Below are positions 6,865 to 29,969 of a stretch of DNA of 64,000 bases, in pieces; position 1 is the stretch's first letter; every line of letters starts with the position of its first letter. Source of the stretch: Rebecca billardiae RCC1528 (Eukaryota; Protista; Haptophyta); assembly GCA_965240325.2 (NCBI GenBank), contig OZ251239.1, positions 744,001 to 808,000 on the forward strand. Direction: 5' to 3'. A model generated the notes under the pieces. It saw only the letters and a program-made list of their open reading frames with translations, ran no database searches and was not told the DNA's origin. A program made the position numbers and the translations under genes.

Positions 6865-9750
6865 TCAGCGGCGGCGCGCGGCGCAGAGCGAGCCCGAGAG
6901 CCGGACCGGATCGGCAGGGCACGCGTCCGCGCTGTCGACAAAGGCGCCGCGCGGCCAGTCGGCCTCGCCGTCCTCGTCCTCGTCGACGCAGGGGGGCGCG
7001 TAGTCCACGCGCACGTCGCGCTCACACCGCTCGCTCTCCTCCGCCGCCACGACCACGCCCCGCCGCTCGAGCGCAGCGAGCGTGCCCTGTGCGGCCGCGC
7101 CCAGCGAGTTGCCGTCGGTCCGGACAATCTCGAGATCGAGATCGGCGGCGGCGGTGAGCGCGGCATCCGGCAGAGAGCTGAGCCGGTTGTCGCGCACGTC
7201 GAGCACGCGCAGCGCGGGCAGCGCGCCGAGCGTCGACTCGGGCAGCTCGGCCAGCCCGTTCTCAGCCACGTGCAGCAGCTCGAGCGACTCTTGCGAGCCC
7301 GCCGCGGCCGACGGCGCCGGCAGCGCGCTCAGCCGATTCGCGGTCGCAAGCAGAGCTTTGAGTGGCGGTCCGTCGGCGTCGAGCAGCCGGGCGGGCAGTG
7401 CGGAGAGAGAGTTGTCAGGCGCGGCGAGCACCTGCAGCCGCGGCAGCGACGCCAGCTCCGTCGGCAGCGCCGACAGCCGGTTCGAGCCCACGTCGAGGTG
7501 CACCAGCGCCGAGCAGAGGCCGAGCTCGGAGGGCAGGCTCGCGATCTGATTGGCCGAGAGGTCGAGGGTGCGTAGCGCCGAGAGCGAGCCGAGCCGCGCG
7601 CTCAGTCGGGCGGGGAAGCCCTCGAGGCCGTTGTGCGCGAAGCTGAGGCTGACCAGCCGCGACAGCCGGCCGAGCTCCGTCGGCAGGTCCGTGATCAGGT
7701 TGTGCCCGAGGTCGAGCGCGCGCAGCGAGCCGCGCGCCGCCGCGAGCGCCGAGCCGTTCACCCGCTCGAGCTGGTTGGTCGACGCGTTGACGGACATCAG
7801 GAGCCCGGAGCTCAGAGCGCCCAGCTCGGTGGGCAGCGCACCGAGGCCCTCGCCCGCCAGGTCGAGCGCCGCGCACGCGCACGCGAGCGGCGTGCCCTGC
7901 GCGGCGCATCCGTACGACACATTCACGCACCCTGCCCACAGCCGGGGGCCGAGGTGCGCGCGGCACTCGGCCTGATGCAGCGCGCGCGTGTCGAGCGAGC
8001 GCAGCGTCGCACTCGCGACGAACAGGCCGAAGGCGGCAGCGGGGACGAGGAGCGCGCTGGCGAGGAGGAGGACGAAGCGGAACGCGCGCCGCGCGCTCGC
8101 GTACGTCAGCGCGAGCGAGCCCACCAGCAGCGCGGCGCCCACGCCGAGCGGCACCCACGCCCAGCCCGCGGCCAGCTGGCACACGGTCACTTCCGGGAAA
8201 GTTCGCTGCACGCCCGCGAACGCGCCCGCCGCGGTCTCGGCGGCGTACGCCCAGCCGAGGCCGACGGCGAGCGCGCACAGCAGGGCGGCCCACGCGCACG
8301 CCGGCGCGAGCAGCCTGAGCAGCTGCCGCACGTCCAGCCGCGGCGGCGGCCTCGACCATCGCGACCACGCCAACTCTCCCAACGGCCCCTCCCGCCAGTT
8401 GTGCCGCACCGCCGCGCGCCGCTGCTTGGTGCGCCACGTGCGCGCGATCGTCGCGGCGGCCGAGCGGCGCGCGCTCTCGTCGATGCGCACGCGCACGTCG
8501 GCGAGGCTCTCCGCGCGCGCGCGCTTGCGCGCAAGGAACCCGCGGAACGCCGCCTGGATCCACACCGCCGCGCGCTCCTCCTGCACAGAGCGAGGCGTCA
8601 CGACTGTGACAGCGGAGCGTGCGAGGACAGGGCTGAGCCACGCGAGCCAGCCGAGCACGCCGTCGCGCGGGAGCTCGCGCACGCGGCGCGGCGGCGCGCG
8701 CGGACCGCCGAGCGCGGCGGCGTACGCGTCGAGCGGCACGCCGCCGACCTCCGCCTCCTCGTACGCCGCCGCCGCCGCGCCGAGCCCGAGCGCGCCGCCG
8801 CCGCCGTCGCCGCCGGCCGCCGGCTCGTCGTACCCCGTGCTCGCATCGTCGGCGCGCAGGCTGCCGCCGCGCGCCTCGAGCGCGGCGCGGAGCGCGGCGC
8901 GGCGCGCGTCGTCGAGCCCCTCGACGCCGCTCAGCTCGAGCTGCAGCGCCGCCGCTCGCCTCGCCACGCCCTCCTGCAGCCGGACCAGTCCGGTGTCCGT
9001 GAGCCGGTAGAGTCCGGACAAGTTGAGGCGGCCTAGGGTAGCGTTGGCGGCCAGCGCCTCTCCGAGCGGCCCCATCGCGCCGTCGCCGATGGCGTAGCAG
9101 CCGGAGAGGTCGAGGGCCGTGAGCGCGCGGTTGGCGCGCAGCCCGAGCCCCAGCTCCACCGCGCCGCGCTCCCCGATCTGCGTGCAGCCGGCCAGGTCGA
9201 GCAGCTGTACCGACGAATTCGACTGCAGCGCGTCGCCCAGGCTGCGCGCCGCGTGGTTGGAGAGCTGCGGGCAGACGGCGAGGCGGAGGACGGAGAGCGA
9301 GCGGTTCTCGCGGAGCGCGCCCGAGAGCTCGAGCACGCCCGCGTCGGTCAGCCGCGAGCAGCGCGACAGGTCGAGCGTGCGCAGCGAGGCGGTCGTGCGC
9401 AGCAGCAGTGCGAGCATGATGCATGCCGTCCGGTCCACGCCCGCGCAGCCGCAGAGCACGAGCACCTCGAGGCCGGGCGCGTGCTCGATGAGCGCAGCGA
9501 CGTTTGTGATCCCGTCGCACGTCAGGTGCGGGCTGTCCGACAGGTCCAGCTCGCGCAGCCGCGAGCGCGCGAGCGCGGGCTCGAGCGCGGGCGTCACGTC
9601 GACGAGCGACTTGTCGGTCAGCCGGCACGCGGTGAGGTCGAGGGTGTCCACGTCCTCCCACGCGGCGTCGGCGACGAGCACGGCCATCTCGCTCTCGCCC
9701 TTACGCCCGCCAAGGCGCAGCACGCCGCCGCGCTGGTGGAACGCCGCCAT
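6865..9750 (-). CDS. LRR (RNI/F-box-type) - IQ motifs - ~3 TM helices - Cys cap - LRR membrane protein
   Basis: N-terminal LDLSxCxxLTDxG repeats, IQAAFRGFLARK, three hydrophobic segments, a Cys-rich cap, then LxxLDLxxNxLxxLP repeats. Single uninterrupted ORF; ATG at 9750. Confidence 0.8.
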   Translation of the reverse strand: MAAFHQRGGVLRLGGRKGESEMAVLVADAAWEDVDTLDLTACRLTDKSLVDVTPALEPALARSRLRELDLSDSPHLTCDGITNVAALIEHAPGLEVLVLCGCAGVDRTACIMLALLLRTTASLRTLDLSRCSRLTDAGVLELSGALRENRSLSVLRLAVCPQLSNHAARSLGDALQSNSSVQLLDLAGCTQIGERGAVELGLGLRANRALTALDLSGCYAIGDGAMGPLGEALAANATLGRLNLSGLYRLTDTGLVRLQEGVARRAAALQLELSGVEGLDDARRAALRAALEARGGSLRADDASTGYDEPAAGGDGGGGALGLGAAAAAYEEAEVGGVPLDAYAAALGGPRAPPRRVRELPRDGVLGWLAWLSPVLARSAVTVVTPRSVQEERAAVWIQAAFRGFLARKRARAESLADVRVRIDESARRSAAATIARTWRTKQRRAAVRHNWREGPLGELAWSRWSRPPPRLDVRQLLRLLAPACAWAALLCALAVGLGWAYAAETAAGAFAGVQRTFPEVTVCQLAAGWAWVPLGVGAALLVGSLALTYASARRAFRFVLLLASALLVPAAAFGLFVASATLRSLDTRALHQAECRAHLGPRLWAGCVNVSYGCAAQGTPLACACAALDLAGEGLGALPTELGALSSGLLMSVNASTNQLERVNGSALAAARGSLRALDLGHNLITDLPTELGRLSRLVSLSFAHNGLEGFPARLSARLGSLSALRTLDLSANQIASLPSELGLCSALVHLDVGSNRLSALPTELASLPRLQVLAAPDNSLSALPARLLDADGPPLKALLATANRLSALPAPSAAAGSQESLELLHVAENGLAELPESTLGALPALRVLDVRDNRLSSLPDAALTAAADLDLEIVRTDGNSLGAAAQGTLAALERRGVVVAAEESERCERDVRVDYAPPCVDEDEDGEADWPRGAFVDSADACPADPVRLSGSLCAARRR

Positions 9751-20648: not shown

Positions 20649-22568
20649 TCAGACCTTGATTCTGGCCGCCTTGGCCGCCTGCGCCTCCGCGGCCTTGGCC
20701 TTCGCCGCCTTCTGCGCCTCCGCGGTGAACGCATCGACGTCGCGCAGCAGCGGACCGCCGCCGCCCGCCGCGGCGGCGCGCGCGCCCAGCGCGTCGGCGC
20801 GCAGCTGGCGCAGCCGCGCGAGTGGGCGCGCGTCAGCGAAGCTACCGGCGACGAGCGCCTCGAGCGCGGCCATCGACGGCGCGAAGAACGCGCCGAGCTT
20901 CGCGCGCAGCTCGGCGGGCATCGTGCCGCGTGTCTGGTGGTTTGGCAGCTGGCTGCGCTTCTTGTGCCCAGTCTCGCACCGGCCCGTGATCGTGCTCGAG
21001 ATCGTGCCGTCGGGCGCGGCGCGGAGCGAGAGGCCGGTGAACGATGCGACGGCGTCGAGGATCGCCTGCCCGCCCATCTCGCGCAGGTCCTCGGAGAACA
21101 TGAACATGAACTGCGCGCGCTCGAAGTAGGCATACGCGCCCGCGACGCACACCTCGTACAGAGAGTTGCGCACGTACTGACGCGCGTCGCCCGAGCCGCA
21201 TCGCATCAGCTTGCTCACGACGTCGGCGGGGCGCATCTGCGCGATGAGCTGCGGCCGGGCGAAGAGGGTGTCGTTGCGGTAGCACGCGCGCACCTGCGCC
21301 GCCTCGATCGCCACGGCGCTCTCGAAGCTCGGGTTCTTCTCCCAGCCCCAGGTCCGGAACATTCCATACTCGGAGAAGGCGCGAGAGACCGGATCTCGCA
21401 GCATCACGATGAAGCGCGCGCGGCGCGAGAGGTCGGGGCCGTAGCGCTCGCGCATGACGCGGAGCGCGTGGGGCGAGCACAGGTAGTTGGGCGTCATGTC
21501 CAGCGTCTGCGCGCGCCCCGCTGGCAGCTCCGCCGACAGCGGGAACGCAATCTTGAAGCCGGCCGAGTCTCGATACGTTGTGCGCTCGCGCGTCGGCGCG
21601 TCCGCAAAGTTGCGCCGGCAGCCGGGCCACGCCGACTTGGGGAAGTAGCCGTTGTCGAGGTACGGCTCGGTCTCGGCGGGGAGCTCGGTGCTGATGTTGC
21701 ACAGCGCGCGCACGCGCGCCGACGTGGCGTCGAAGAAGCGGCGCATCGCCGCCGTGCCCAGCCGCGCGCCGCGCGGCGGCGGCGGCGCGCCGTTCCGTTC
21801 AGCCCAGAGACAGAGGGGCACGCGCGGCCCCGCGAGGGACGCGAGGTCGCGCGCGGCGCCGGGCTCGCGCGGCATGACGTCCTTGTTGAAGAAGAAGGGC
21901 TCCTTCACGTCGTGGAACATGCCCACCGACGACGGGCGCAGCCCGGACAGCAGCCACGCGCGGCCGGCGCACCGCTCGTCCGCCCACGCCGCCGGCTCGG
22001 GTGAGTGGCAGACCACCTTTGGGTGGAAGGCGTAGCTCGCGCACTTGTGGATGAAGGTGGTGCCCGCCTTCGGGCAGCACGGCACGAAGAGCGTGGGCAG
22101 CACGCGCGTCGAGCGGAACGCGGCGGGGCTCGCCGACTCCGCCGCCACCACCGCCGGCACGTGCTGATCGGCCAGCGAGCCGTTGCACTCGAGCGCGCTC
22201 GCGGGCTCGGGGATCCGCACCGCGGCGGCAGCGCCCGCGGCGCGCGCGCGCGCGCGGGCGCGCGCTCGGCTCGGTGGCTCGGTGCGCTCGGGGCGGGGGT
22301 CGGCGGCAGGGCCGGTGGAGCGTATGCTCGCGGCCTCGCGCGCAGGCTGTGCGCGCGATGGAGCGGCCGGCGCCGCGGCGATCGGCGCGGCAGCGCCCCT
22401 CGCTGCACGCGCGTCGCGCGCGCGCATGTCGGCGCCGGTCTGCGCCTCGACGGGTCGCGCGTGTTCGACCGCTTGGAACGCACGCTGCCAGCCCAGCCCG
22501 AAGGTGATCACGCCGAGTACTACGGCGAGCACGAGCCCGCGGTAGAGCGGGTGCTCCTGCGACGGCAT
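20649..22568 (-). CDS. Golgi-type sulfotransferase (heparan-sulfate 3-O/N-sulfotransferase-like)
   Basis: Signal anchor, 5'-PSB PKAGTT, KEPFFF, DMTPNYL and 3'-PB MLRDPVSRAFSEY. An alternative start lies at 22613. Confidence 0.85.
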   Translation of the reverse strand: MPSQEHPLYRGLVLAVVLGVITFGLGWQRAFQAVEHARPVEAQTGADMRARDARAARGAAAPIAAAPAAPSRAQPAREAASIRSTGPAADPRPERTEPPSRARARARARAAGAAAAVRIPEPASALECNGSLADQHVPAVVAAESASPAAFRSTRVLPTLFVPCCPKAGTTFIHKCASYAFHPKVVCHSPEPAAWADERCAGRAWLLSGLRPSSVGMFHDVKEPFFFNKDVMPREPGAARDLASLAGPRVPLCLWAERNGAPPPPRGARLGTAAMRRFFDATSARVRALCNISTELPAETEPYLDNGYFPKSAWPGCRRNFADAPTRERTTYRDSAGFKIAFPLSAELPAGRAQTLDMTPNYLCSPHALRVMRERYGPDLSRRARFIVMLRDPVSRAFSEYGMFRTWGWEKNPSFESAVAIEAAQVRACYRNDTLFARPQLIAQMRPADVVSKLMRCGSGDARQYVRNSLYEVCVAGAYAYFERAQFMFMFSEDLREMGGQAILDAVASFTGLSLRAAPDGTISSTITGRCETGHKKRSQLPNHQTRGTMPAELRAKLGAFFAPSMAALEALVAGSFADARPLARLRQLRADALGARAAAAGGGGPLLRDVDAFTAEAQKAAKAKAAEAQAAKAARIKV

Positions 22569-23094
22569 GGCCGATGGCGGCGCTCCCACTGCGACGCGAA
22601 AAAAAGGGACCATGCATTGGAAAGCGACGCGCGCTGTGATGCGAAAAACATTTATTTTGACCCCTTGGGCCTTGGCCCTTTATAGATGTGACCGTGTGTG
22701 AAAACGTCAAAATCTACCCACCACATTTGAACAAAGTACTCAATCACGTACTACGGCGGTGTTTTCGAAGCCGCCGAATAGTAATCAGGCGTATCGTTAA
22801 CTCGTATGACGGTCAAACTCCCAGTAGCCGTACGGGATCTCGCGAAGTTTCATGACCAATCTGCAATATACTATCTCCCTTGATCCTGGGCTTCGTCGAA
22901 TCGTCGAGGTGTCAGCCCCATAATCACACCGAGCAGAAGCCGTCGTAAACATAGTCATCAACATTGCCGGAGCGGGCGGCGGGCGGAGTCGTGCCACACG
23001 CGCGGGGCCATCCTTTTCATTTCCTCGCGCGTCTCTCGCCATCGCGCCGGTCGCGCCGATGTGGCGACGGGGAGCGTCGGCTGTGAGCACTGGC

Positions 23095-26000
23095 ATGCTC
23101 GCGCGTGCCTTGCGTGCGGCGTCGGCCGCCTTTGCCGTTGTGCTCGTCGTCGCTCCTCGCGGGGCGTGTGGCGCGCCGCTCGACATCTCAGCGTGCCTGG
23201 CTGACCCGCCACACTGCCAGAGCATCCTTGCTACCTCGCAGGGACTCACGGGCACGGTTCCTACCGGTGTGTCTCTTCCCCCTCCCACCCTGCGGCTGCG
23301 CGCTGCGCCCCGAGTGCGCGAGCTCGCCACCGCGTGGCGCGCACTCACAACCCCCGTATCGTTGTTCATGTGCGCCGCGCAGAGCTCGGCCTGCTCACCG
23401 AGACGCTGACGCTGGGTCTCAACTTCAACCTGCTCAACGGCACTCTGCCCACCGGTGTGTAGCACCCCTCTGCGCGCTGCAGCCGCGCGCACGCCGCTCA
23501 GCCCAGCCCCTCTCTCCCTCCCCCCTGCTCGCAGAGCTGGGGCTGATGCGCATCGCGCACGGCGTTTACCTCTCTGGGAACGAGCTGGAGGGCACGGTGC
23601 CCACGGAGCTCGGCCAGCTCGGAGGGCTGCGTGATCTCTTCCTGGAGGGCATGGGACTGCGCGGCACGATCCCCACCGAGCTTGCGCGGCTCACAGTCCT
23701 CAACGAACTGTGCGCGCCGCGCGCCCCGGTCGAGAGCCTAGGCAGCCGCCGGACAGGCAGGGCGGCTGCCTCGACTGAGCGTGGAGCGCGCCGACCCCGC
23801 CGCCGCACCCCGCGCGCCGCGCAGCAAGCTCACGAACAACGGCCTCACCGGCACCCTCCCGGGCTCGGTGGTCGGGGCGTGGACGGCGCTCGCCAAAATG
23901 TGCGCGCGGCCGCTCCCCTGCCTCTGAGTGCCTCCCCCGCTTCTTCACGCTTCGTCACGCGCCGCCACCCCTCGCTCGCAGCCCGTTGGCGGCTCACGCG
24001 CCGTCACTCCACGGGGCCCGCCACCGCCGCCCCCCCCCTCCCCCCTCCGCGCCCTCCTCGCCGCGGCTGCTCGCAGGGAGGTTGGGCGCAACGCGTTCAC
24101 GGGCACGCTGCCTTCCGAGCTCGGGCGCCTCACCGCGCTGCGCATCGCGCACGCGTTCCGAAACTCGCTCGTGGGCGCGATTCCGAGCACGATCGGCGGC
24201 TGCACCGCGCTGGAGAACTTCCGGCTCACGTTCAACTCGCTGCAGGCGGTGCCGCCGGCGCGGGCGCTGCCGACGGAGCTCGGGCGGTGCACCCGCCTGA
24301 GCACCTTCTCCCCCGACTTCAACCCGCTGCTGCGCGGCGACGTGCCCTCGGAGCTGTGGCGCGTGACGCAGCTCGGCTTTCTGCACCTCTCGCACACAGC
24401 GCTGAGCACGACGCTGCCGACGGAGGTCGGCGCGCTGACCAAGCTGTGGAGCCTGCGCGTGCAGGAGATGGGCACGCACGGCACGATCCCCACCGAGCTG
24501 GGCGAGGCGGCGGCCCTCACGATGCTCGACGTCTCCTACACGTCCGTCTCTGGCAGCGTGCCGACCGAGCTGGGCCGGCTGAGTGTGCTCACGCACGCCA
24601 AGCTCGCGCCGTCGGCGCTCGGCGGCGCGGTGCCCACCGAGCTCGGCGCTCTGAGCGCGCTCTCCAAGCTGGGCCTGCCGGAGGCGATGTGCGCGAACTT
24701 CCCGATCGGCGGCGGCTTCGGCACCGCGCCCGCGCCGCCTTGCCTCTCGCCGCCGCCCGCGCCGCCATCGAGCCCGCCCGCGCCGCCGCCGCCGCCCGGC
24801 TCGTCGCTGCTCGCCGAGCTCGAGATTGCAATCTCGCTGCCCGAGTTTGGCGCGGCGGAGCGCGCGGCGCTCGGCGCGGCGCTCGCCGGCTTCCTCGGCC
24901 TGCCCGAGCACTTCGTCGCGGTGCGCTCGGCGCGCGCGGGCTCGACGCTCGTGCAGCTCGAAATCTACGAGCCCATCGACCGCCTCGCGCCGGTCGCCGA
25001 CCTGCTGACGGCCACGTCTCTCCCGGCGCTGAGCGCGGCGCTCGGCTTCCAGGTGCTGGCGCAGCCGAGCGTGCTCGCGCCCGCCAGCCCGCCCGCGCCC
25101 GCGTCGCCGCCGTCGGGCGGCGCCGTCGGTGCTGCCGACGACGGCGGCGGCGGCGCGGCGCTCGAGCTCGGCCCCGCCGCCGCGGACGCCGAACCCGACC
25201 CGGCAGTGGCGCCGCCGCTCCTGGCCGCGTATGCACTCTGCGCCGGCGCGTGCGCGCTCGGCGCGTGCCTCTGGTACGCGCGGCGCGCGCGCGCGGCGGC
25301 GGACTCGCAGGCGATCGAGGCGGCGCTCGCGTCCAACCGCTCGTTCCAGTTCCCGATGCACCTGCTCTCCGCCACCGACTTCATCGAGTACGGCCGGCTC
25401 GCGCAGTTTGAGCGCGTGCGCGACGAGAAGAAACATCTGGTGGTGGTGCGCTGCCACGCCGCACGCGCGCGGCGGCCGGTGCCTGCTGCGCGCGCGGCCC
25501 GATGGCATGCAGCGCCGCGGACGTGCGATGCGCCGATGCCCGACGCGCCCGACTCACTGCATGCACGCCGCGCCGCCGCCCCGCTCCCGCGCCCTCCCCG
25601 CTCCCGCGCCCTCCCCGCTCTCGCGCCCGCACGGCCGCGCGACCGCAGGACCTGGTGGAGGACGCGCGCGCGCTGTTCCTTCCGGCCGAGGCCGCGACGC
25701 GCCCCACGCTCTCGCCCGCGCCGATGGCGAGCAGCTTCCGCGCGGGCGCGGGCCTGCGCAGCGCCGCGGCGGCCGCGTCCGCGCGAGGCTCCCTCCCAGG
25801 CTCGACTAGCAGCTCGTTCCGAAGCGCGTGCTCCGTGTGTGCGCGCGCGCCGCACGGCTCGTCGGTCGGGTGCTCCTCTCCGAAGGGCCTGGCGAAGCGG
25901 CGGCGCTCGCTCAGCCCGACGGCGCCCCCGCGCGCGCCCAGCCACGCGCAGGGCGCGCTGCCGCTGGTGCGCGTCTCCAGCCACCACTCGCTCACGCCGC

Positions 26001-28153
26001 CGCTCTCAGCCAACGTGGGCAGCCAGCTGAGCCCTGAGCTGTCCGCGCGCGTGGCGCGGGGCTCTCGCGCCAGCCCGGCGCCGCCCGCGCGCGGGGCGCG
26101 CCGCTCGCGCAGCCCCGAGCTTGCCGCGCGCCGGGTGCAGAGCGCTGCCGAGCTGTGCGCAGACGCGGCCGCCTCGTCGCGCGGGCCGCGCCTCGCCCCA
26201 CGCGCCGCGGCGTGCGTGGCGCCCGAGCTCTCCGCGCCGCTGCACCCCGCGCGCCCGGCGGCGCCCATAGCCCAGGCGGGCTCGGCCGCAAGCCTGCGCG
26301 CGGACGTGGGCGCGCGCTCGCTCAAGATCTGCTTCGTCTCGCACCAGTGGCTCAGCTACGACAGGCCGGACCCGGCCAGCATGCAGTTTGGCGCCATGGC
26401 GAGCGCGGTGCGGCACGTGGCCGCGGCGAACGGCTGGGCGCTCGAGGACGTGTTCGTCTGGTGCGACTTCTCGAGCGTGCCGCAGCGGCACGCGCCTTCG
26501 CAGGCGGCGGCCATCTCATCGCTCGCGCTGTACGCGTCCGTCGCCTCCGCCTTCATCGTCGCGGCGCCGGACTCTCACCACGGCAACACGGGCGCGCCGG
26601 TGGGCGCGGACTCGTGGCGGACGCGGCTGTGGTGTCGCGCGGAGCAGGTGACGACGCGCGCTCGACGCGCGCCGTGCGCCGGCGGCGCGCGCGCCCCGCG
26701 CGCCCTCGCCGCCCGCTCAGCTTCTCGGCCGCCGCCGTGCCGCGCCGCCGCCGCGCCATGCCCCTGCCGCTTGCCGCGCGCGCGTGGCCCGCGCGCGCGC
26801 GCATCAGTTCTGCTACGTCGCGATCAACGGCCCTCGCAACGTGTGGCTCGCTACCTCGAGCTCTGAGCCGCCGACGCTGGTCGACATGCCTTGGCTCAAC
26901 TCGACGCTGATGGTGTGCCCGGGCGTGCACGCCGCCGCCGCCGCCGCGCCGCCGCCGCCCATCCGACCCAGCGGGTTGCCGCGCACCCGCCCGCGCCCGG
27001 CGCCTCGGCTCGCGGACGCGCCGGGCGTGCAGGCGGGCACTCACGAGCGACCCCGCCGCGGCGCCGCCCTGCCGCCCGCCGCCGCGCACCGGCAGGTCTT
27101 CGAGGGCGAGCTCTCGTGCTGCGCGAGGCGGCACCGCGGCGAAGGCAACGAGCCGCAGCGTGCGCGCGCGCGCGCGCGCGCGCGCTGCAGCGCCGACCCC
27201 CGCGCCCGCGCGGCGCGCCTCGCCGCTTCGCCCTCGCGCGCGCCGCCCACACCCCTGCCGCGGCTCTGTCCTGCGCTCTGCCCCTCACGCCCTCCGCCCG
27301 CCCTCGCACCCCTGCCCCTCGCCCGTGCCCGCAGAGTGCGACCGCGAGCGTCTGGTGCAGCCGCTGCTGGGCCTGTATGGGGAGCTGTATGCGCGCAAGT
27401 GCCACGACGAGCTCACTGCTCTCCCGGCGGAGGCGGCGGCGGCGGCCGCGGCGACGATGGCGCGGCGGCGCAGCCGCCGCGTCTCCGCGGGCTGGCGAGG
27501 CCGCACGGCCAGCGTACGGCACTCCGGCGCCGCCGACTCATCACCGACGTCGTCGCCAACGTGGGGGCGCAGCGCCGCGCTTGAGCTCGGCCTCGCGCGC
27601 GCGTCGCAGTCGGAGGCGGCGGATGCGAGCGACCGCTCAGCGCCCGTCTTCCAAGACCTGATGGTGCGTGCGCGCCCGGCCAAGCGCATGCGCGCACGCG
27701 GCCCCCGACGCCGACGCACTCACGGCGCGCGCGCATCGTCGCCACCCCGACCCGGCCGTGCACCGCCCCGCTGCGCCGTCCAATCGCCCCTCGGCCTCGG
27801 CCTCGGCCTCGGCCTCGCGCTGCTGACGGCAGGCGTGGCTCGACGGCCCGCGCAAGACCCGCCTCTTCCCGAGGGACTTCCGGTACGCCACCGAGCGCGG
27901 CGTGCGCTCGCGCGTGCTCTTTGGCCGCCTCCTCGCGCAGATGGAGTGCAGGCAGGAGCTGGCGGCCGCGCGGCTCTGGCAGGGCGACGCGGGGCTGCAG
28001 CCGCGCCGGAGCCGCACCGGGTCCCCGGACGTGCCACGACGACGCTCGAGGCCGTGGAGCGAGGCGCGCGCAGTGCGTCAGCTCGTCTGCTGCGCGTGCA
28101 CGTGCTTCGTCCATCAGCAGGCTCCGGTGTACTCAGACGATGCCGCGGCGTGA
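23095..28153 (+). CDS. Multi-exon receptor: signal peptide - plant-type LRR ectodomain - TM - cytoplasmic HET/TIR-like domain
   Basis: LxGxIPTELGxL repeats joined across introns 23267-23382, 23455-23534, 23710-23824 and one ending 24076. TM LLAAYALCAGACALGACLWY-ARR. Cytoplasmic FPMHLL...FVSHQW...PDP...VWCDFSSVPQ...AISSLALYA...RLWCRAE. The 3' exon boundaries are approximate. Confidence 0.75.
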
Positions 28154-28687
28154 GCCTTAGCGGACCCTAGCCAAGTGCCCAGGCTCGGGAATGGGTACTA
28201 CTGAGCCGGGGCTGAGCGCGTGTCTAGCTCGGACCGGCTGCCACGCATACCGCACTCGGCTGAGCCCCTCAATGTGAGCGCGCCCTCGTGAACCAGCGCA
28301 CACTGCTGAGTACCGCCGCAGCCGCGTAGCCGTGTGCCAACCGGGCGGTGCCCGCAGCTTCACAGGCCGCGTTGCCGTACGCGACTTCCTGTCGCCGCTG
28401 CCACTCGACTGAGAGTGAGCGGAGTGAGCTGGTCCTGCCGCCCGGCCGGCTCGGACTGTGGGCCTGGCATGCGGCGCGGCCGAGGAGAACACCGCGCCTC
28501 GCAACCATCGATCTCCGCTTCGTCGCGCCCGCCCGGGCAGCCATGCGGAGGCGATGACGAAGCGTCGTCGCCAGGGCGTAGTTGAGATCCGTCAAAGCCT
28601 TCGCTCCGTGCTCGCTCGGTCATCAGCCAAGTCAACGCGCTCCTGTCGCCTTCCGTCGCACCAGCGCTTCAGCGCGCGGGCCGATTC

Positions 28688-29969
28688 ATGGGCTCTGACG
28701 GCGCAACCCGGCGCCGCCGACCGACGATGCGCGCCACGAGCAGCGGGCGCACGGCGGGCGAGCTCGAGGCCATCGCCGCGTGCGCGTCGTATGCATTCTG
28801 CTCGGTCTCCTTGTCTCTCTGCAATAAGCTCGTCTTCTCCGGCAAGAACTTCGACTACCCCATGGCCATCCTCACGTTCCAGAGCCTGTGTGCCGTGATC
28901 TTCTTGAAAGGCGGCGACCTCGTCGGCCTGTCGAAGCCGATGCCGCTGCAGAGAGGTGCGATGGGGGATGCGTCGGCACGCGCTCTTCGCCCCGATCCCC
29001 CACGCCGCGCTGACGCGCTCCGCACGCCCCGCAACGATGCCGCGCGCGCGCGCGCCGGCAGACTTGTTTGTTGCGATGGCGCCGGTCACGTTGCTCTTCT
29101 GCGCAATGCTGTGGACGTCGGGCAAGGCGCTGCGGTTCTGCTCGATGCCGCTCTTCACCGTCTTCAAGAACATGGCGGTGGTCGGCACGACCACGTGGGA
29201 GTACTTCCGCTTCGGCAACACCGTCTCGATGGGCGCGATGTTTTCGCTCCTGATGATGGTCGGCGGCTCGGTCGTCGCCGGGTACGGCGACATGACGGCG
29301 ACGATGGAGGGGATGTTCTGGCTGATGGCGAACGTGGTGGTGACGGTGGCGTACCTGGCCACGCTCAAGGAGCGGATGCCCACCGACGTCTCCTCCTCCT
29401 CCAAGACGCTGCACAACAACGTGCTCACGCTGATGCTCTTTGTCGTCTCCTCGGCCGCGACCGGCGAGCTGATGCCGTTCTGCACGCAGCTGAGCAGGCA
29501 GCCGGCGCGGATGCAGCTGGGCGTGCTGATGACGGGCGTGCTGGGGACGGCGATCAACATGTCCACCTTCTGGTGCATGCACGTCACGTCGGGCGCGACC
29601 TACGCCTTCGTCGGCGCGACCAACAAGATCCCGGTCGCGATCCTAGGCCACTTCCTCTTCCACTCGGTGCTCACGCCGTCCGGCTGGATGGGCGTGGGCT
29701 TTGGGCTGGCGGCGGGGCTGGTGTACGCCGTGGCGAAGGAGCGGGAGCGGCAGCTCAAGGACGCGAGCGCGATCGCGGACGGCGCGCAGCGCGAGCGCGA
29801 GCACCTGCTCGGCGAGAACACCGACGACGCCGCCAGCCCGGGCAAGCCGGTCGCCACGCGCGTCGCGGGCGGCGTGGCCGCGGCCCCGGACGGGCCGGAG
29901 GCCGACGTCGAGCTCGGCCGGCTGGGGGCGGGCACGGTGCGCGGCGGGGAAGACGATGACCTGAGATGA
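28688..29969 (+). CDS. Nucleotide-sugar transporter (GDP-mannose transporter Vrg4/GONST-like, SLC35); intron ~28956-29061
   Basis: YAFCSVSLSLCNKLVFS, WTSGKALRFCSMPLFTVFKN, HNNVL and WCMHVTSGATYAFVGATNKIP motifs. Confidence 0.88.

Follow-up and report, generated by a model that had tools for sequence, protein, structure and literature searches.

Background

Fungal heterokaryon-incompatibility proteins and NLRs carry the HET domain (PF06985), a soluble and cytosolic cell-death module which often forms the N-terminus of NLRs, and in which the motif strings SHxW, WIDxxCIxQ and RxWCxxE recur. Outside the fungi, HET domains are known in green algae and moss (PMC4540973). The TIR domains which act as NAD+-cleaving enzymes (NADases) have a WxxxE motif in their C-helix, of which the Trp and Glu residues are essential for catalysis and bind NAD+ (PMC10641520). 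Receptor-like proteins of the haptophyte Gephyrocapsa huxleyi have been described with an extracellular leucine-binding-like/EGF-like region, a transmembrane segment and an intracellular TIR domain with conserved Glu, which the authors aligned to the RPS4 TIR domain; these proteins are expressed mainly during viral infection, with one cluster expressed already 0.5 h after inoculation, and according to the authors the genes lack leucine-rich repeat (LRR) or nucleotide-binding site (NBS) domains (PMC12489294, New Phytol 2025). A survey from 2010 detected LRR receptors neither in Emiliania huxleyi, the one haptophyte covered, nor in the alveolates examined (PMC2939053). Here we describe a gene in a 64,000-nucleotide (nt) stretch of the haptophyte Rebecca billardiae RCC1528 (contig OZ251239.1, positions 744,001 to 808,000; the whole stretch is called the window), which is predicted to combine an extracellular LRR region with a cytoplasmic module resembling HET and TIR domains. 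Marine phytoplankton sense nutrients, microbes and viruses, and few of the surface receptors or output chemistries involved are known.

Layout of the predicted receptor

The gene is located on the plus strand (23059-28153) and consists of ten exons (E1 to E10, Table 1), which together comprise 3717 nt or 1238 codons and stay in frame through to a TGA stop codon. The exons were searched one by one, and evidence on the fold was taken from a contiguous homologue (P0003) and from family alignments. Translation and hydropathy place a signal-peptide-like h-region (AAFAVVLVVA) at the N-terminus, followed by a Cys pair ahead of the first LRR, and then by approximately 13 LRR units of 24 residues (xxLPxELGxLxxLxxLxLxxNxLxG). 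These are of the plant type (the 24-residue GxIPxxLG class), as judged from the periods in exon E5 (24, 29, 25, 24, 24, 24 and 24), from the Pfam matches in the first part of E5 (LRR_14, E 1.7e-8, and LRR_1), and from a search with the LRR part of P0001, the best match of the window core, which retrieves plant LRR receptor-like kinases at E-values of about 1e-80 to 1e-90. The transmembrane helix is the only one and is followed by RRARA, which fits the positive-inside rule, so that a type I topology with a cytoplasmic C-terminus is predicted. All of the elements listed in an initial annotation of this DNA, i.e. signal peptide, Cys cap, around a dozen LRRs of 24 amino acids (aa), Pro-rich stalk and single transmembrane helix with basic stop-transfer, were recovered, as were the motifs SHQW, WCDFSSVPQ, ISSLALYA and RLWCRAE on the cytoplasmic side, including the retained and putatively catalytic Glu of the last motif, which is invariant across the family described below.

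With its signal peptide, capped extracellular LRR solenoid, single transmembrane helix and TIR-superfamily-like cytoplasmic domain, the predicted protein resembles the animal Toll-like receptors (TLRs), and such a TLR-like layout is supported, as is the likeness of the tail to HET. It differs from the TLRs in its LRRs, which are of the plant-type 24-residue GxxPxELG class and not of the TLR type, and in its tail, which is HET-like and not a bona fide TIR domain, and which carries a probably disordered insert of 208 aa. The convergent TLR-like receptor proposed earlier thus stands with regard to the layout, whereas the tail makes it a TLR-like receptor and not a TLR; nothing points to shared ancestry with TLRs, and the layout therefore seems to have been put together independently. 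The type and period of the LRRs, the Cys caps and the single transmembrane helix are shared with plant LRR receptor kinases and receptor-like proteins, whereas Pfam detected no protein kinase family in any exon piece and the output is the HET/TIR-like module instead. What sets the gene apart is that this module bears an extracellular ectodomain of plant-type LRRs: a haptophyte-type alga builds a TLR-like plan from different parts, plant-type LRRs and a HET/TIR-like tail, with a large disordered insert in addition.

A common output module of single-pass protist receptors

We searched 1.84 billion representative sequences for relatives of the 112-residue core (26312-26647) using phmmer, which gave 1329 representative matches at E ≤ 1e-3 and 483 at E ≤ 1e-10. 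The window core is 45-58% identical to the top matches, and in nearly all of those among the 150 best matches which have enough N-terminal sequence, a hydrophobic helix ends 65-95 residues before the core. Named sources include Diacronema lutheri, Pavlovales sp. CCMP2436, Isochrysis galbana, the diatom Stephanopyxis turris, the dinoflagellate Effrenium voratum and MMETSP transcripts. An alignment of 67 module sequences (A1) gave the consensus FxFPxxLxSAxDFxxxGxLxxHExLR...LD for the juxtamembrane element, FFSHQW..PDP...VWxDYxSIPQ...LAIxSLxxYAS...FVIVAP..H.DTG...TYxxRxWCRAEQ for the core, and VFxGxxTCC, CDKxxLVxPxLGLY and FP....LFGxL for the C-terminal blocks. The conserved cytoplasmic module therefore spans approximately 330 residues, with the juxtamembrane element first, then a core of the flavodoxin-like type, and a helical/beta part at the C-terminus. 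Eight residues (E34, S68, W71, Q116, R163, W165, R167 and E169 in P0003 numbering) are invariant and about 18 are near-invariant across sequences which are 23-45% identical, and the many invariant polar residues at this level of identity argue for an enzyme over a scaffold. The invariant E34 is located in the juxtamembrane element, which also holds near-invariant Pro, Phe and Arg residues. The module is intact in the window gene: every family-invariant residue is present in its exons, and the transmembrane helix lies upstream of the core, as in the other members of the family.

Ectodomains of 62 members were searched with Pfam, which most often gave ANF_receptor (7), Peripla_BP_6 (6), Ephrin_rec_like (6), dCache_1 (3) and MHYT (3), next to several solute-binding families, CUB, EGF, Ig-like and beta-helix matches, while LRRs were found in only 2/62. 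Proteins P0008, P0012, P0296 and P0297 are examples of the module on varied ectodomains. A word-filtered search with the cytoplasmic part of P0001 returned five proteins, adding MMETSP transcripts with ANF_receptor and Ephrin_rec_like ectodomains, whereas the search with full-length P0001 was dominated by generic LRR proteins and was uninformative on the combination of LRRs and module. Judged from these sequences, the module is not peculiar to the LRR protein but serves as the shared output of a very large family of predicted single-pass receptors, a superfamily whose output domain has no Pfam model; hundreds of distinct sensor ectodomains in three major lineages of algae carry this tail. Members with ANF_receptor and Ephrin_rec_like ectodomains (P0296, P0297) fit the G. 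huxleyi TIR receptors, matched by description only, and the window gene differs from the latter in its LRR ectodomain. As the G. huxleyi TIR-like receptor proteins are reported to be expressed mainly in viral infection, the family may bear on alga-virus interactions. The structural neighbours in the ESM Atlas also include cytosolic haptophyte clusters, which join a similar fold to Ank, MORN, LRR_6, HNOB or TPR.

Comparison of the cytoplasmic core with HET and TIR domains

The only Pfam family which recurs among the relatives is PF06985, with matches at E ≤ 0.1 in 20/67 sequences (best E 1.9e-5). Nine relatives were also scanned singly, six of which scored 13.9-21.7 bits for HET, and all nine remained below the gathering score of 22.5 bits, which the window core does not reach either. 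The HET alignments in the relatives are collinear, starting at position 1-5 of the hidden Markov model on the SHQW strand and reaching approximately position 107 of 146, and the conserved blocks appear to follow the same order as in fungal HET domains: an S-H-x-W strand, W-x-D-x-x-S/C-I/V-P-Q and R-x-W-C-x-x-E. HET is thus the closest named family to the core, and sequence comparison makes a good case for distant homology between the core and the fungal HET domain. The core differs from the latter in its position C-terminal to a transmembrane helix in a receptor, in its juxtamembrane element and C-terminal extension, and in its distribution, since the family of the window module is found in haptophytes, diatoms and dinoflagellates and not in fungi.

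The similarity to TIR domains lies in a compatible predicted fold and in the position of a motif. AlphaFold2 modelling of P0003 with the family alignment gave a predicted local distance difference test (pLDDT) of 88 and a predicted template modelling score (pTM) of 0.85 for the whole module, and of 92.8 and 0.88 for the core, which is modelled as a flavodoxin-like beta-alpha sandwich. A Trp and a Glu with a spacing of four residues are conserved without exception in sets of 67 and of 60 sequences, and in the core model this WxxxE (W110/E114) lies at the beginning of the helix which follows the third strand (helix 109-122, following strand 83-87), thus matching the TIR C-helix motif as defined in PMC10641520 both by motif and by modelled helix position. 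Together with the modelled flavodoxin-like alpha/beta core at the output end of a receptor, this is what the module has in common with the TIR domains which are NAD+ glycohydrolases or cyclases (SARM1, the plant TIR-NLRs RPS4 and RUN1, and the bacterial AbTir and ThsB).

Foldseek searches of PDB and BFVD gave nothing at E ≤ 0.001; TIR domains account for 12 of the 50 best structural neighbours (RPS4 TIR, probability 0.93, E 0.055), and lumazine synthase and designed cages lead the search with the core, with a poor root-mean-square deviation (rmsd) of 8-10 Å. In the ESM Atlas, the fungal cluster 'HET-domain-containing protein' (Ascomycota, 100% of members carrying PF06985) aligned over 187 residues of the predicted module, longer than any TIR alignment, with template modelling scores of 0.40 (query) and 0.50 (target) and an rmsd of 4.5, while the ESM Atlas feature search gave no usable match. 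The TIR/HET fold expected for the cytoplasmic part is therefore matched by a TIR-compatible model and not by a significant structural match, and the modelled core is best described as compatible with the TIR/deoxyribosyltransferase class without being diagnostic of it.

Comparative support for a single gene

The LRR region, transmembrane helix and cytoplasmic domain had been assigned to one gene, and this is borne out by P0001 (849 aa, 58% identity in the core in the phmmer search), a single uninterrupted open reading frame (ORF) on two assembled contigs of 2.7 kb, with flanks of about 130 and 30-40 nt, which look like a transcript. P0001 has a signal peptide, at least nine GTLPTELG LRRs, Cys caps, a Pro/Ser-rich stalk and a transmembrane helix followed by RRRR, and on the cytoplasmic side the juxtamembrane element, SHQW core and C-terminal blocks as in the window gene. 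In tblastn comparisons, P0001 and the cytoplasmic-only P0003 are collinear on E2, E3, E5, the E6 core, E7, E9 and E10, while the short exon E8 (VFEGELSCC) resembles VFEGQLTCC and VFEGEMTCC of relatives when compared by eye. The junction between E5 and E6 (KKHLVV|DLVEDARALF) reproduces QQHKVLDLVEDAHAFF of P0001. The window gene's own annotated protein was absent from every search result.

With regard to the exon boundaries, each of the nine introns is 80-203 nt long with GT..AG ends; the donors read GTG(C/T/A)G and mostly resemble G|GTG(C/T)G, and the acceptors read (C/T)CAG and resemble CGCAG throughout. The donor of E1 (G|GTGTGT) splits a GAG codon, and splicing completes TVPT-E-LG; similarly, the 24-residue LRR register is unbroken over the E1/E2, E2/E3, E3/E4 and E4/E5 junctions, where the split codons restore the LRR consensus. 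As this is not expected by chance, exons 1-5 belong together. A further comparison is offered by P0002 (Pavlovales sp. CCMP2436, KAJ1632992.1), which has extra non-conserved sequence in two places (residues about 364-400 and 455-490), directly behind WCRAEQ and ahead of CDR, at positions matching introns 6 and 8 of the window gene; the public gene model of P0002 probably retains unspliced introns, and the intron positions appear to be conserved between the two algae.

Proposed mechanism and alternative explanations

We propose, by analogy with TIR enzymes, that the type I single-pass surface receptor encoded by the window gene may signal via an N-glycosidase/NADase-type tail, a tentative reading to which we give slightly less than an even chance. 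Binding of a ligand to the LRRs would cluster the receptors, which would bring the cytoplasmic cores close to each other and switch on an N-glycosidase-type active site, formed by the invariant Trp-x-x-x-Glu with which the helix following strand C begins and by the invariant Ser, Gln and Arg residues. This site would cleave NAD+ or a related nucleotide, as TIR enzymes do, and would thereby produce a small signalling molecule or lower the NAD+ level locally. Such an enzyme would add a receptor-coupled form to NAD+-derived signalling, and would connect algal sensing with TIR immunity and with fungal HET domains. The wider proposition, that the SHQW/WCRAE module is a receptor-coupled TIR/HET-type nucleotide-cleaving enzyme serving as general output in haptophytes, diatoms and dinoflagellates, is doubtful; if true, the module would play the role filled elsewhere by receptor kinases or receptor guanylate cyclases, an NAD+-derived second messenger would report nutrients where the ectodomain is of the ANF, solute-binding or Cache type, and molecules of microbial or self origin where it consists of LRRs, and the LRR version would be an independent invention of the Toll-like receptor plan.

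Several results weigh against an NADase-type receptor. The likeness to HET which had been claimed for this protein is found in its relatives, which match PF06985 remotely, and not in the window's own core: none of the window pieces matched HET at E ≤ 1, and the 112-aa core did not do so at E ≤ 10. No TIR Pfam model (PF01582, PF13676 and related) was found among the window pieces or the 67 relatives, nor in the window core even at E ≤ 10, and profile searches of PDB sequences with the family alignments A1 and A2 gave no matches, TIR or other. In the structural searches, flavodoxin-like reductases and lumazine synthase score similarly to TIR domains. A relationship between HET and TIR has been stated, and enzymatic activity of HET domains is not yet established (PMC10197012); for the present family, an NADase role is proposed purely by analogy. 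The ectodomain repertoire is closer to nutrient or chemical sensing than to pathogen recognition, and as most ectodomains are sensors of small molecules, general transmembrane signalling is at least as likely as immune cell death. Finally, the exon chain is a prediction from sequence comparison, a point to which we return below.

One alternative, with the same architecture, is that the core is an enzyme of other chemistry, which binds or transfers nucleotide-sugars or nucleotides (glycosyltransferase-like or deoxyribosyltransferase-like) and modifies a cytoplasmic substrate when ligand is bound; we consider such a chemistry unlikely. Less likely again is a non-catalytic assembly or adaptor domain which recruits partners after clustering, like the TIR domains of animal TLRs: the eight invariant and about 18 near-invariant residues persist at 23-45% identity, and the conserved set, which includes a Ser-His-Gln-Trp loop, Asp, Gln, two Arg and Glu, points to an active site more than to an interface. 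The NADase-type tail remains the reading we prefer.

A different kind of alternative is that the gene model is partly wrong, either because the two halves are separate transcripts, or because the 208-codon insert is wholly or partly an unrecognised intron; besides the basis of the exon chain mentioned above, this is favoured by the absence of the insert from P0001 and P0003, by the ease with which open frames arise in DNA of 78% GC, and by the GT and AG dinucleotides inside the insert, and taken as a whole it is improbable. Separate genes for the LRR and HET-like halves were rejected on the single ORF of P0001 and the conserved motif restored at the E5/E6 junction, and as no stop or start signal intervenes between the two halves, and the ends of intron 5 (GTGCGC...CGCAG) are those of the other introns, separate transcripts are very unlikely. 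The insert was described earlier as a Ser/Pro/Arg-rich segment of about 200 aa interrupting the HET-like domain; it is present (208 aa), but it does not cut the core, as it lies between the DLVEDARALF helix and the first core strand (ICFVSHQW), corresponding to the loop between helix 48-54 and strand 63-69 in the P0003 model. In frame, its GC content at third codon positions is 0.92-0.94 in every 150-nt bin, level with the LRR and core regions (0.96), whereas the nine introns have no consistent codon-position bias. It contains a degenerate triple direct repeat (26030-26149, spacings of 42 and 39 nt) encoding SPELSARVARGSRA, SPAPPARGARRSR and SPELAARRVQSAA, with frequent RRxS-type motifs, and a repeat period that is a multiple of three means that part of the insert arose by in-frame duplication. 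At 624 nt it would also be three times longer than any of the nine other introns. An intron was judged less likely on the codon-position GC and repeat period, and a cryptic intron has a low probability; these features and the loop position suggest that the insert is probably translated as a disordered surface loop, most likely a lineage-specific regulatory or spacer segment. Because of the insert, the transmembrane helix lies 290 residues upstream of the core, compared with the 65-95 residues in relatives.

Gene structure and genomic context

The coordinates of the exons and of the protein features encoded by them are given in Table 1. The model starts at the ATG at 23059, with the in-frame ATG at 23095 as an alternative. 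The segment of approximately 94 aa between stalk and linker (SSLLAELEIAISLPEF...GFQVLAQPSVLAP) has an alternating hydrophobic pattern, which suggests a small folded domain; Pfam gives only a weak HVO_1552_C match (E 0.068), and the segment has no counterpart among the fetched relatives and is absent from P0001. A second low-complexity stretch, next to that of the insert, is located in E9.

Table 1. Exons and encoded features of the LRR receptor gene (window positions)
Feature	Position	Strand	Content and evidence
Exon E1	23059-23266	+	Start codon, signal-peptide-like hydrophobic stretch, N-cap Cys pair, start of first LRR; translation, hydropathy
Exon E2	23383-23454	+	LRR; tblastn match to P0001 LRRs
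Exon E3	23535-23709	+	LRR; Pfam LRR_1 match; tblastn match to P0001 LRRs
Exon E4	23825-23899	+	LRR; exons 2-4 together hold LRR units 2-5
Exon E5	24077-25445	+	LRRs, Cys pair, stalk, ~94-aa segment, linker, transmembrane helix, start of juxtamembrane element
E5, first part	24077-24743	+	Eight further LRRs, C-terminal Cys pair (codons at 24690 and 24741)
Pro-rich stalk	24744-24800	+	Middle of E5; translation
~94-aa segment	24801-25082	+	No family assignment; between Pro-rich stalk and transmembrane helix
Pro/Ala/Gly-rich linker	after 25082, to 25217	+	Middle of E5; translation
Transmembrane helix	25218-25280	+	LLAAYALCAGACALGACLWYA; sole strongly hydrophobic segment, top Kyte-Doolittle window of E5
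Juxtamembrane element	25281-25678	+	FQFPMHLLSATDFIEYGRLAQFERVRDEKKHLVV / DLVEDARALF; interrupted by intron 5 (25446-25648); alignable with P0001 and P0003 across the junction
Exon E6	25649-26647	+	End of juxtamembrane element, 208-codon insert, core strands A-C, start of helix C
Ser/Pro/Arg/Ala-rich insert	25679-26302	+	208 codons; tblastn gap versus P0001 and P0003
HET/TIR-like core	26303-26647	+	Strands A-C and start of helix C; phmmer family, invariant residues
SHQW	26339-26350	+	Core motif
WCDFSSVPQ	26459-26485	+	Core motif
ISSLALYA	26513-26536	+	Core motif
RLWCRAE	26624-26644	+	Core motif; Glu codon 26642-26644
Exon E7	26808-26912	+	Remainder of helix C, strand D (E7-E8); tblastn high-scoring segment pairs (HSPs) to P0001 and P0003
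Exon E8	27096-27159	+	21 codons; VFEGELSCC block, fits family consensus VFxGxxTCC
Exon E9	27335-27663	+	CDRERLVQPLLGLYGELY helix, low-complexity linker; near-invariant Asp (CDR) present; tblastn HSPs
Exon E10	27833-28153	+	FPRDF...LFGRLLAQME block, tail, TGA; near-invariant Pro (FPRDF) present; tblastn HSPs

Most of the window has a GC content of 69-83%, and the short GT-AG introns in the gene region indicate that this high-GC DNA is eukaryotic. A second plant-type LRR region was located by tblastn with P0001 at 7036-7935 on the minus strand, with 29-32% identity and E-values down to 1.5e-13; it is probably part of another LRR protein gene, and the same search did not detect an SHQW core there. 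The regions flanking the receptor gene (22614-23058 and 28154-28687) have a lower GC content and contain no extended frames resembling coding sequence; a minus-strand ORF of 654 codons (20649-22613) ends upstream and another ORF on the plus strand starts at 28688, so that the limits of the gene are well defined.

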